A stretch of DNA of 32,000 nt, from NCBI RefSeq assembly GCF_000400465.1, contig NW_008806279.1:176107-208106 (forward strand). The letters are read 5' to 3'. This stretch comes from Wallemia ichthyophaga EXF-994. Lineage: Eukaryota; Fungi; Basidiomycota. Below, one piece after another: positions 11,263 through 26,450 of this stretch. The position numbers and the translations under genes are program-made. The notes below the pieces were generated by a model. The model was given only the letters and a program-made list of their open reading frames with translations, ran no database searches and was not told the origin of the DNA. The number at the start of each line of letters is the position of its first letter. Within the stretch, counting starts at the first letter, position 1.

Positions 11263-14200
11263 ATGACTAAATTTCAAGCTTTCCCGTATAGCCCATACGC
11301 AATACAAAATGATTTCATGAGCGCTTGCTACGACGCGTGCGAGAACTCATCCGTCGCAGTACTCGAATCACCTACAGGTACCGTAAGTGGATGGACTGTC
11401 CGGTACAAGCATCCGCTAAGTACATGTTTTGTAGGGTAAATCGCTCAGCTTGTTAGTTGGATGCCTGACTTGGCTAAGGGATTATTCTATACGCGTTGGT
11501 TAAGCTTTAGTGGCTACATCGGCAGCTGATGCGATCATTCTAGTCGAGGGACTCTACAATTGATCGTTTGAGAGAGGATTTGCTGGCTAAGAAAGGCAAC
11601 AAGCCTGCTTGGGTCATTGAACACTCTCTCAAACTCAAGCGAGAAGATTTGGTGGGTTGGGTCGGTGACAGCGTGTACACCGCTAAATACTCAAAAGGAC
11701 AACGAATTGAGGCTTATGGATGAAAGACTTGCTGCTGTCAGGGAAAAAGAGCAGCTACTGCGCAAACATACTGTTAAATACGATGACGACAACGCACGCA
11801 AGAAGATTGTCGGTGTTGCTTTATGCGGGTTTACAATAATGCTCAATCTGCGCTAGAGAATTGACTACGACGATGCAGCTGATGACGACCATTTTCTGCC
11901 AGACGAAAACTGCCAATCCGAAAATGACGACATCAATGCCGACGCGAAGGCAATGCTTGATGAGTGAGTTGAGCGTGAGCGTGAGCGGTGATAGCAGAAC
12001 ACAGCTAATGCAAATCAGATTCGATCTCAACTCCTCCAAATTACACTCTTCCAAGCAAAACCAAAATCAAAACCGCTCCAAGTACATGGAAGCAGCAGAA
12101 CTGCAAGAGCAAGAAGTGGACAGAACAAAGGTGTGTTTTTCACACGCTCACGCTGCTATCTAACAAAACATTTGCAGATCTTCTTCGCATCGCGCACCCA
12201 CTCCCAATTATCTCAGTTCATCTCCGAGATAAGCAAGACATCATATCAAGAGAACGCGCGGGTGATATCGCTAGCATCGCGCAAGAATCTCTGCATAAAC
12301 AGCAAGGCAAGGAATGCACCGGGCGGGGACGCTGGACTTAATGAGCGATGTCGCGAGCTCAGGACTGCGCCTGCATCGAGTGAAAAAAGGTGTGAGTTCT
12401 ATCCTAAGATAGATGAGCAAGGGAGACTGCTCGAGTTCCGCGATCACGCTCTATCTTCTATACGCAATGTAGAGGATCTCGAGGAGCTTGGTAAGACACT
12501 GCACGTCTGTCCATACTACGGGTCGAGGAGAGCAATCAAGCAGTCAGAGGTGAGAGTTTAGTTTTAGTTTGCATTGAAAACGACCTTCTCATACTGTCTA
12601 GATATGTACTCTGCCTTACAACCTCCTTCTTTCCAAAAGAGCGCGGGAGTCCCTGGGTATATCATTGAAAAACCGTATGTCTATCGCCACGCATAGACAC
12701 TTCGCTCATCATTTCACAGACATAGTCGTGATAGATGAAGCACACAACCTTATCGACGTGCGTTGAACGTGAAGTGATATCAGACGATCTAACCAACTAA
12801 TCGAAAATCAGACAATACTCGCAGTACATTCATGCAGCGTCACAATGCGTACGCTCAATGCAGCAATCAATGCACTGTCCACATACATGCAGCGCTACGG
12901 CAAGCGTCTCAGCGGCCAGCACCTGGTATCGCTCAAGTTGTTTGCCAAAACACTTAAGGGCCTGATAGTGTTTTGCGACAAGATGAAAGCGCAGCGCGAG
13001 ACGCAAAAAGCAACGCCGAGGCAAAAAAACGACAAGCAGCCACATCCACAGACACAGACACAGGAAGAAATATTCCAACCCAAAGACGTCGTCGAAGGGT
13101 TCGGCGAGGATGTCAATCTCGGTAGTGTAGAAGCTTACTTGCGCGATTCGCATATGTCTCAGAAGGTGTGTATAATGTATGATTTGCAGTGAATTTAAAT
13201 CAGCGTACTGACTCAATTGCCAAGCTGGGAGCATTCGCCGAGAGGGAAGCTAAGCAAGACAGCCTAAGAAAGCCCTACAACAAAGATAGTAAAGACAGCA
13301 CAAGCACTGATAACGTCAGCTTCGCATCTGCAAGTTCGATGCATCACGTGCAGAGTCTGCTACTCGCTCTCGCCTATCCGGACAGTGATGGGCGAGTAGT
13401 GGTAACGTTCGAAGCGGACACCGTGCGACTCAGCTACCAGCTTTTGAATGGTGCTGAGCATTTCAGGAGCATACTTGATGAATCACGCGCTGTTATACTC
13501 GCTGGTGGTACTATGCATCCCATAACTGACTTTAAGACATTCCTCATGCCTTCACTGCCCCCGTCCCGGTTCACCAGCCTCAGCTGCGCTCATGTCATAC
13601 CTCCTTCTCACCTCCTCGCTACAGCTCTAAGCAAGGGTCCTAGTGGCCTAGATATGGATTTCAGATACGAGGCGCGATCTAAACCGGAGCTGATGAATGA
13701 GCTGGGAATGATCGTGCAGAATCTAATCAATTTAGTTCCAGATGGGCTCGTTATCTTCTTCCCTTCGTATGGATACCTCAATTCTGTCGAAGCTCATTGG
13801 AAGAAGAGCGGTGTGATAGGACGTATTGAACAGAAAAAGAAGCTCTTCCGTGAACCTAAAGAAGCGGCGGATGTGCAGATCACTTTGGATAAATATACAC
13901 AGGGTATTCAATGCAAAACTGGTAAAATTACTGGATCCGTCCTCTTCGCTGTTGTAGGCGCGAAGCTTTCTGAAGGTATCAATTTCTCGGATAACCTCGC
14001 ACGCTGTGTCGTCATGGTTGGCCTCCCATTCCCCTCACCTTCACCTGCATTAGAGGAGCGAAAGAATTACGTTCGAAGCTTCACTAAATCATCACAACAC
14101 GATGCGGGGAATGAATTGGTAATGAATCAGTGCATGAGATCCGTCAATCAATCAATTGGTAGAGCTATTCGACACCAGAATGACTGGGCGGGTTTAGTGC

Positions 14201-24729: not shown

Positions 24730-25435
24730 ATGACGACAGCAGTTGATAAAGTCGATAAGATATCGATCCATCCAAATGCTTTGGTTTGCCAGGTGTGTAG
24801 GATTTGCTAGTTTGTAGTGGTGTAAACAACTCACAACACTCACAGGACGCTGACTTGAGAGGTAGCATTACAATCTCCAGTGGTACCGTTATACATCCAA
24901 AATGCACTATACTTGCTGTACCAGGGGCTATAGTTATTGGTGAAAACTGTATAATTGAAGAATCTGCGATAATTGTGAATAGGTAGGTTTAAGTGGTCTT
25001 ATATACCACTCTAACACCCTCACAGACGCAAAGAACCCATGCTCATTGGCGATGAAAACGTATTCGAAGTTGGCTCACGTGTAGAAGCTGCTTCTGTAGG
25101 CTCACGCAACACATTCAGCGTAAAATCAAGAGTTATCTCGTCGATAGAGATCCCTAACGACTGCTCTATCGGCCCAGCTTGCATTCTTACTCCTTCATAC
25201 ACATCCCCGCAAAGAGAAGACTTCAGAGAACGACTGCAAGATTACACAGTGGTGTACGGGCAGAACCCGGATCGGAGAATTGGTGATGCTGTGGGCAAAA
25301 TACACCAGAGAGCACTACTAGCCAAGCACCTCGAGTACCTCAGAAATGTCGGTAAAATTTGCTACTCGAGAATCTTCAAACTAATTGCAAAGCACATAGG
25401 CATTACCAAAGTATATTAAAATGAGGAATGTATAG
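24730..25435 (+). CDS. DCTN6: Dynactin subunit 6 (p27), left-handed beta-helix, about 185 aa
   Basis: Exons 24730-24792, 24846-24982, 25026-25347, 25400-25435; introns are 53, 43 and 52 nt. Sequence includes ALVCQ|DADLRGSITISSGTVIHPKCTI, IGENCIIEE, IGDENVFEVGSRVEA and KHLEYLRN|ALPKY. Confidence 0.88.
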
Positions 25436-25464: not shown

Positions 25465-25649
25465 CTGCTTTTGTTGAGTTAGCTTGGTGTACAAGACATG
25501 CGCCAGGACAAGGCCATGTCTATCTAGTCAGTTTTTCATTTTCTCATTCAATGTAGATTATGAAGTCTAACATATCTTATTTGTGGTACTTCTCTAGTAA
25601 CTCATCCTATCAAACAACTGCCTTGTCCTGCTTATAATTATCTACTCAC
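25465..25649 (-). other. Candidate 185-nt spliceosomal intron in the PUP3 3' UTR containing a structured element (possible snoRNA host)
   Basis: Donor GTGAGT at 25649-25644, branch GCTAAC at 25483-25478, acceptor CAG ending at 25465. An 11-bp inverted repeat lies at 25630-25620 and 25514-25504. Confidence 0.5.
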
Positions 25650-25681
25650 TTGGTCATGGAGGTTTCGGTGAAGGAGGGAAA

Positions 25682-26450
25682 TCAGTCCATACGAGACTTG
25701 AGGGAGCGAGTGATAATTTTCTCAGGTGTTCTGTGTTTATCGAATGGTTAGAATTGTGTTTTCAGTGTCTTTGTGCTACATCACTCACATCAAGTGCACG
25801 ACTGCACCCCAACCAGACAAGGCATCACGATCGACACCGTTAAGAAGAGTTTGTGAGACAGTTTCAAACAAATCCTCAGCTTCAAGATCTGGTTCCCATA
25901 GACTTTCAGCCATACCAAACATCTTATCAGAAGCAGTACCAGAAACGACGAAATCCTTAGCAAAGTTGAGGCAGCCGATGAGGTCAGTGGCTGCTATGAA
26001 AGGTTCACTGTTGTTTGGGTCTAAACCTGCGACAACGGGCTCAACAAAGTAAGGCGACCACCTTCTTTCGTAAAGAGTGGAGCTGACCAAGTGAGCGAAC
26101 GTATTCGGTTCAATTTCTCTGCCCTCCTTGAGCTTGTACATGTTTGTTCTGAATCTGAACGTGTCTCTCCTGTGCGGGTGTGAGTGTACGCGTCATTACC
26201 ACCACCAAGACTAACAAAGTGAGGACATCTGTAGCCAATCCAGGCAATCCAACGTATAGTTTTTGCGTAATTGGGAATACCTGCGTGCGTATGAGATGGT
26301 ATACACGCCTCACACGCCAATTCCCACCTTTTCGAAGTTTGCCGCCAAACTCATGTTCCTGTTGCCCAATCTCAAATCACCGGCGATTGCGACGCATTTC
26401 TTTCCTCTCATCGCGACTACTGAGCCGCCGTTGTATTCCATTATAGACAT
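25682..26450 (-). CDS. PUP3: 20S proteasome subunit beta-3, 205 aa
   Basis: Exons 26450-26328, 26280-26216, 26169-25789, 25730-25682; introns are 47, 46 and 58 nt. Sequence: MSIMEYNGGSVVAM...GLPGLATDV...RRWSPYFVEPVVAGL...DRDALSGWGAVVHLI|TPEKIITRSLKSRMD. Confidence 0.97.

Follow-up and report, generated by a model that had tools for sequence, protein, structure and literature searches.

Intronic box C/D snoRNAs are released from their host transcripts by splicing, debranching and exonucleolytic trimming. The described RNAs closest to the one reported here are SNORD104 (RF00289), yeast snR58 and plant snoR58Y, all of them box C/D guides for a 2'-O-methylated cytidine (Cm) of LSU rRNA (human 28S C1327, yeast 25S C663 and Arabidopsis 25S C675), and plant snoR64/Z200 (RF00267). 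An external stem, located beyond the mature ends of the snoRNA, is known to aid folding and snoRNP assembly and to stabilise the kink-turn (PMC5519232, PMC4150776), and intronic C/D snoRNAs are preferentially positioned about 50 nt upstream of the branch point (PMC5519232). Stems of another kind, the zipper stems, occur in long introns of S. cerevisiae (RPS17B/RP51B type; PMC2536676), where they pair the region after the 5' splice site with that before the branch point, shorten the effective distance within the intron and loop out a sequence that is functionless in itself.

We analysed a window of 32,000 nt from the genome of Wallemia ichthyophaga EXF-994 (contig NW_008806279.1), in which an inverted repeat lies in the gap between PUP3 and its convergent neighbour. 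In our judgement it is quite likely (probability of about 0.82) that positions 25649-25465 of the minus strand form a spliceosomal intron in the 3' UTR of PUP3, with a box C/D snoRNA (roughly 90 nt) inside it. A snoRNA placed in an intron of a host gene and closed by an external stem is textbook biology; what is new is the unannotated snoRNA gene together with its intron, as well as an explanation of why one intron is outsized where introns are otherwise very short. The features of the locus, all on the minus strand, are as follows.

25682-26450, minus: coding region of the host gene PUP3 (20S proteasome beta3), 4 exons, 205 aa, from splicing and translation
25650-25681, minus: 3' UTR exon 1 of PUP3, 32 nt, from the stop codon to the 5' splice site
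25465-25649, minus: predicted 3' UTR intron, 185 nt, GTGAGT ... GCTAAC ... CAG
25644-25649, minus: 5' splice site GTGAGT, 32 nt after the PUP3 stop; GTGAGT or GTGAGC across lineages
25620-25630, minus: 5' arm of the outer stem, CAGGACAAGGC; GAGGGAA in W. mellicola and CCACCAC in the ENA lineage, with matching partners
25611-25616, minus: 5' strand of the inner terminal helix, UGUUUG, paired with UAGACA in the MFE, centroid and duplex folds
25602-25608, minus: box C, AGGAUGA (consensus RUGAUGA); GGATGA is invariant; aligned to box C of snoR64
25585-25601, minus: conserved 5' block GUUACUAGAGAAGUACC, nearly invariant in the alignment
25563-25577, minus: predicted antisense guide AGAUAUGUUAGACUU, invariant in all lineages; its core UGUUAGACU aligns to the consensus guide of SNORD104
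25559-25562, minus: degenerate box D', CAUA, aligned to CUGA of SNORD104 and CAGA of snoR64
25541-25547, minus: box C', AUGAGAA; AAUGAGAA matches the snoR64 consensus, and one strain has AAUGAAAA
25528-25531, minus: box D, CUGA, invariant
25517-25522, minus: 3' strand of the inner terminal helix, UAGACA, partner of UGUUUG
25504-25514, minus: 3' arm of the outer stem, GCCUUGUCCUG, pairs with the 5' arm
25478-25483, minus: branch-point motif GCTAAC, 45 nt after box D; CTAAC or CTGAC across lineages
25465-25467, minus: 3' splice site CAG; the W. mellicola-type cDNA junction falls after the corresponding CAG of the W. mellicola locus L001
25400-25464, minus: 3' UTR exon 2 of PUP3, of which only the start is defined, antisense to the stop codon and coding end of the neighbouring gene

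The resemblance to SNORD104 is found in the guide. Its core stands directly upstream of box D' in both RNAs, and the same target cytidine, the third nucleotide of GUCUAAC, is predicted. The two RNAs differ in that the one of Wallemia is longer from box C to the guide and carries there a conserved 17-nt block which is absent from SNORD104, its box D' is CAUA instead of CUGA, box C has a G at position 2, and the host is an intron of the PUP3 3' UTR. With plant snoR64, the W. mellicola sequence can be aligned over the full length, including the terminal stem, box C, the guide, box C' and box D. The guide reads CAUGUCAGACUUC in the plant RNA and AUAUGUUAGACUUC in Wallemia, while the box C' sequence is identical. 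This G-to-A difference in the guide matches what we take to be a difference in the rRNA itself, i.e. UGAC in plants and UAAC in fungi. Unlike the clustered, polycistronic snoR64 genes of plants (PMC2875012), the Wallemia RNA resides in a UTR intron; moreover, whereas Arabidopsis snoR64 is assigned to 25S U2884 (PMC8053127), the short and variable spacer on the box D side of the Wallemia RNA cannot guide there.

When compared to the intron-encoded box C/D snoRNAs of vertebrates and yeast, the locus shares with them the presence of one snoRNA per intron and of a flanking external stem. However, its host intron lies in a 3' UTR, while theirs interrupt coding regions or 5' UTRs; this intron has about three to four times the length of the ordinary ones examined (three of PUP3 and eight of W. 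mellicola), and the stem (11 + 6, 13 or 12 bp in the three lineages) is long for a snoRNA. As to the zipper stems of yeast, the likeness is that here, too, the stem would shorten the effective distance, leaving 47-58 nt, but what is looped out in Wallemia is a conserved snoRNA, and the snoRNA alone is enough to explain the stem.

The host gene, PUP3, starts with the ATG at 26450 and ends with a stop codon at 25684-25682 of the minus strand, and its three coding introns (26327-26281, 26215-26170 and 25788-25731) are 47, 46 and 58 nt long. The protein has 97% identity to PUP3 of W. mellicola and belongs to PF00227. The gene convergent to it encodes a hexapeptide-repeat protein, consistent with dynactin p27/DCTN6, whose TAG ends at 25435 of the plus strand, in agreement with the annotated gene ends at this W. 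ichthyophaga locus (L002, GCA_000400465.1), with which the sequence around the gap is identical. From the ends of these two reading frames we obtained a gap of 246 nt, the very length that had been reported in an earlier note on this DNA. In the gene models retrieved for W. ichthyophaga and W. mellicola, PUP3 ends at the stop codon and the gap is empty, with no snoRNA in it. The gap is four times the usual size (judged by the other gaps listed in the earlier note) and the intron three to four times the ordinary one, which would be because room is needed for the snoRNA (about 90 nt) together with its stem.

In several strain annotations of W. ichthyophaga, PUP3 and the upstream gene with a YAE1 domain make up a single protein of 395 aa (P0121-P0124). 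This looks like a merged gene model, as its size is close to the sum of 202 and 205 aa.

Loci for comparison were obtained through the members of the PUP3 cluster: the locus of W. mellicola CBS 633.66 (L001), two loci of a distant Wallemia-like lineage from ENA metagenomes (L004 and L005), and several W. mellicola-type strains from Logan and ENA. Between the three deep lineages (W. ichthyophaga, W. mellicola and the ENA one), the core from box C to box D (79-81 nt) is 86-93% identical, and the flanks of the intron are 46-58% identical. The guide with box D' (UAAGAUAUGUUAGACUUCAUAA), GGAUGA and CUGA are invariant across the lineages. Outside Wallemia, a search up to 2.5 kb from PUP3 in Calocera, Serendipita and Ustilago revealed no guide of the GUUAGACU type, so that the association with PUP3 looks specific to Wallemia; a scan of metagenomes for the guide gave a single match, unrelated and due to chance.

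The intron has GT..AG borders and a branch motif at the usual spacing (GCTAAC, then 10 nt, then CAG), as expected of a spliceosomal intron. Its three signals lie exactly where the earlier note had placed them and delimit the same 185 nt. All three Wallemia lineages retain GTGAG(T/C), CT(A/G)AC and an AG downstream of it. Removal of the orthologous intron is seen in a Logan contig of 2671 nt (L003, run SRR23314750), which is collinear with the W. mellicola genome, runs unbroken across the convergent pair and is 94-99% identical over four genes. It lacks nine GT..AG / CT..AC segments, namely eight of about 41-71 nt and one of 166 nt. The latter corresponds to positions 3788-3953 of L001, from GTGAGTCT to AACCCCAG, and is orthologous to the 185-nt intron. 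As every intron is absent, the contig must be RNA-derived; the evidence for splicing consists of one assembled contig from one run, whose library type is not given and whose RNA origin is deduced from the loss of introns. The junction, where CATCATGAT is joined to AAGTAG, is separated from the PUP3 stop codon by 29 nt of uninterrupted sequence, and the intron is therefore part of the PUP3 transcript. The first 3' UTR exon accordingly measures 29 nt in W. mellicola, and about 60 nt in the third (ENA) lineage. We did not find a paper on run SRR23314750.

The presence of an unannotated intron in the 3' UTR of PUP3, as had been proposed, is thus borne out by signals conserved in three lineages and by precise absence of its ortholog from a cDNA-like contig. 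As for the spliced transcript itself, the outcome was mixed. The junction exists for the W. mellicola-type ortholog, but the 25650/25464 junction of W. ichthyophaga was not present in any of the five Logan contigs which match the window exactly at this place: four of them hold the whole unspliced intron and one ends within it. Since these contigs are identical to the window and unspliced, they provide neither polymorphism nor evidence on splicing.

In spliced PUP3 mRNA, exon 2 would begin 29 nt beyond the DCTN6 stop codon and continue antisense into DCTN6, and therefore the mRNAs of PUP3 and DCTN6 must overlap at their 3' ends. The sequence TATAAATA had been put forward in the earlier note as a putative 3'-end signal of PUP3. 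In two contigs of a W. mellicola-type strain (L008 and L024; Logan SRR33769985 and SRR33769984), CCCCCG stands where other strains have the CCCCAG acceptor. With this CAG lost, the 3' splice site must shift by 3 or 6 nt downstream, and such a shift is harmless in a UTR.

Between the arms of the repeat, on the minus strand, there is an 81-nt box C/D snoRNA core. Both boxes that define the class are present, with box C at 6 of 7 positions of its consensus, and box C, the guide, D', C', box D and the closing stem follow each other in canonical order and spacing. Box C is [A/G]GGAUGA in every lineage, L001, L004 and L008 included, the only departure from RUGAUGA being a G in place of U at position 2. 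Box D' agrees with CUGA at 2 of 4 positions. The spacer on the box D side, of about 9 nt, is short and variable, which makes a single guide probable for this RNA. In the three lineages, 36-45 nt separate box D from the branch motif downstream, not far from the distance favoured by intronic C/D snoRNAs. Hence, the earlier suggestion that the intron carries RNA cargo could be given a more definite form, a box C/D snoRNA, on the basis of the layout of boxes, the conserved core and sub-threshold Rfam matches to C/D families.

The G at position 2 of box C is a fixed departure and occupies a loop position of the kink-turn. The block at 25601-25585 of the minus strand, GUUACUA[G/A]AGA[A/C/U]GUACC, sits between box C and the guide, outside the latter, and is almost invariant in the three lineages; it might pair additionally with pre-rRNA or fold into a small hairpin.

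A crude search of the whole window for box C and box D with a flanking duplex returned two loci, of which the intron candidate had by far the strongest duplex (-25.7 kcal/mol). The other (9656-9545, minus strand) was rejected, being inside a long coding ORF. We also rejected a plus-strand reading of the gap, as it has no C/D order of boxes and its fold is ordinary (z = -0.91); the sole snoRNA-family match on that strand of the gap is a weak one to snoR160, outside the stem. ARAGORN found no tRNA in the window.

No Rfam family matched the window at gathering thresholds. In a permissive scan of the gap on the PUP3 strand, the snoRNA-family matches were all box C/D, none of them reaching a gathering score. 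The best-scoring family in all three lineages was snoR64, with 18.2 bits in W. ichthyophaga, 22.3 bits in W. mellicola (E = 0.03-0.04) and 18.8 bits in the ENA lineage (gathering score 45); SNORD104 scored 11.9 bits (gathering score 40). With scores below gathering we claim no family membership, and it is the guide which leads us to regard the RNA as a functional counterpart of SNORD104. In the cmscan alignment, the consensus guide of SNORD104, GUGUUAGACUG, followed by D' CUGA, aligns base for base with AUGUUAGACUU followed by CAUA in Wallemia. As the registers of guide and D' coincide, the fifth nucleotide upstream of D' is the same G as in SNORD104.

The guide is complementary to GGAGUCUAACAU, which we take to be present in fungal 25S rRNA. 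It is thus predicted to direct 2'-O-methylation of the C in GUCUAAC that corresponds to C663 of 25S in yeast numbering, i.e. the snR58/SNORD104 site. In the yeast 25S sequence, an A stands at the known Nm site A649 and a C at each of C650 and C663, the last one being the target C. This Cm site of the LSU is the one assigned to yeast snR58 and to SNORD104. The sequence GGAGUCUAAC is generally conserved in fungal LSU rRNA, and the predicted target pairing in Wallemia rests on that. In Arabidopsis 25S rRNA, A661 and C675 are methylated, and C675 is listed under snoR58Y (PMC8053127). The two positions are offset by 12 nt from A649 and C663 of yeast, which is consistent with their being the same sites. 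Our literature search yielded no paper pairing snR58 with C663. Taken at the level of sequence, the RNA would be the Wallemia counterpart of snR58, SNORD104 and snoR58Y.

We then come to the inverted repeat. The perfect 11-bp repeat (25630-25620 / 25514-25504), the 105-nt loop and the two tails, 19 and 39 nt long and together 58 nt, were all found as they had been described. By itself the repeat is not striking. Perfect inverted repeats of at least 11 bp with loops of up to 200 nt are represented in the window by 3 distinct cases, while shuffled sequences lead one to expect about 1.6. The stem is present in both the MFE and centroid structures of the 185-nt intron, but the overall folding energy is ordinary (z = -1.47). 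We take the stem as real because of the comparison of lineages, each of which forms a strong stem from different sequences. In W. ichthyophaga it consists of CAGGACAAGGC..UGUUUG / UAGACA..GCCUUGUCCUG, that is 11 + 6 bp with a small internal loop; in W. mellicola of GAGGGAAUGUCCA / UGGACAUUCCCUC, 13 bp; and in the ENA lineage of CCACCACGCUCG / CGAGC-C-GUGGUGG, 12 bp with a bulge. The flank duplexes have energies of -26 to -30 kcal/mol and z from -4 to -5.5, and in every lineage 0-1 of 300 shuffles were as good. The W. mellicola homolog of the inner helix, UGUCCA/UGGACA, differs from that of W. ichthyophaga by compensatory and wobble changes. The stem is thus conserved in structure and place, not in sequence, across the three lineages, in all of which it forms a terminal helix and places box C next to box D. 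We used statistics of flank duplexes and not column-by-column covariation because MAFFT leaves the lineage-specific stems out of register. A comparison of the arms across related genomes, recommended in the earlier note, therefore speaks for a selected stem, with unrelated sequences pairing at the same place and doing so better than shuffles. In one W. mellicola-type strain (L008), a G.U wobble replaces a G-C pair of the stem.

In two ENA assemblies of W. mellicola type (L016 and L019), the 13-bp stem is interrupted by one mismatch (U x C) or by two, and in L016 both partners of one pair are changed with pairing not restored. From these mismatches it follows that the stem tolerates some damage.

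The stem stands hard against boxes C and D, which marks it as the terminal/external stem of the snoRNA. Such a role explains the inverted repeat without invoking the size of the intron. According to the mechanism that we propose, transcription of PUP3 would run beyond the stop codon into the gap, and the composite stem (11 + 6 bp around a small internal loop) would join box C AGGAUGA and box D CUGA, so that a kink-turn may form. Snu13, Nop56, Nop58 and fibrillarin would assemble on the nascent intron, which would then be spliced out, a step documented for the W. mellicola-type ortholog only. The lariat would be debranched, with exonucleases trimming it to the protein-protected snoRNA, whose guide upstream of D' would pair with 25S rRNA around GGAGUCUAACAU and direct 2'-O-methylation of the C in GUCUAAC. 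The spliced PUP3 mRNA would be left with a short, two-exon 3' UTR in antisense overlap with the end of DCTN6. As a secondary role, the stem may draw the splice sites of the outsized intron together and thereby aid the spliceosome.

This last idea can be pushed further. It could be that the stem serves mainly to loop out the 105 nt and thus to present an intron of normal size to a spliceosome tuned to about 45-60 nt, the cargo being secondary. The length left outside the stem (58, 56 and 47 nt in the three lineages) is always within the normal range of introns, and long yeast introns are spliced better when base pairing brings the 5' splice site closer to the branch point (PMC2536676). On the other hand, the stem directly adjoins boxes C and D, the very place required of the terminal stem of a snoRNA, and nothing else in the gap is as conserved as the looped-out part, which indicates that the cargo is under selection. 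Moreover, the short tails may be just the minimum needed for splice signals in a compact genome, and pairing between the tails of the intron is no better than in shuffles. We find this account rather unlikely, and similarly doubtful is a stem with two jobs, snoRNP assembly plus restoration of a normal effective intron length of 47-58 nt in the three lineages. On the latter view, the Wallemia spliceosome would handle almost exclusively introns of about 45-70 nt, and an intron could house a snoRNA only when a strong closing stem conceals it. Were the stem to have both jobs, it would be required for splicing as well, and a hard upper limit on intron size would exist in Wallemia. Pairing of the tails, the 5' splice site included, had been suggested by duplex folds and was rejected on this account.

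A different question is whether the snoRNA has to be spliced out at all. It might have its own promoter in the gap, or be freed from read-through transcripts by a nuclease (e.g. RNase III acting on the long stem) followed by trimming. Long external stems can indeed uncouple box C/D snoRNP assembly from splicing (PMC5519232), and none of the matching Logan contigs of W. ichthyophaga is spliced. Nevertheless, the exact GT..AG removal in the cDNA-like contig and the conservation of splice signals amid otherwise diverged flanks argue for splicing, and the first 3' UTR exon, with its 29-60 nt, leaves little room for a promoter. We therefore regard release without splicing as improbable, bearing in mind that the two routes are not exclusive and that the nuclease one could run in parallel. 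Least probable, to the point of being hardly credible, is pure coincidence of an inverted repeat and splice-like motifs in an ordinary 3' UTR or intergenic spacer. It would agree with the near-chance rate of perfect 11-bp repeats in the window and with the not unusual folding energy of the intron, but is contradicted by the conserved core, lineage-specific compensated stems, conserved splice signals and the cDNA junction. We thus prefer the reading of a spliced 3' UTR intron which hosts a box C/D snoRNA.

A survey of fungal snoRNAs reported an apparently heavy loss of snoRNAs in "W. sebi" (PMC5824354), which could be explained in part by diverged snoRNAs that go unnoticed in UTR introns like the present one. 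The locus also offers a compact natural system in which to ask if one and the same stem is needed both for assembling the snoRNP and for splicing an oversized intron. Finally, as stated in the part of PMC8476143 that cites Zhang and Sachs (2015), 3' UTR introns can trigger NMD in fungi; an intron 32 nt past the stop codon may thus affect stability of PUP3 mRNA, a link that is speculative.

The window holds other inverted repeats, too. One is a perfect 12-bp repeat, AGCGTGAGCGTG / CACGCTCACGCT (11972-11983 and 12143-12154, plus strand), whose arms lie in neighbouring short introns (about 11966-12020 and 12131-12178) around an exon of about 110 nt. It could be due to chance, or it could be a case of intron-intron pairing that favours exon skipping or circularisation. 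Another, a perfect 11-bp repeat, GTTTGAGAGAG / CTCTCTCAAAC (11566-11576 and 11624-11634, plus strand), has a 47-nt loop and appears to be within coding sequence.
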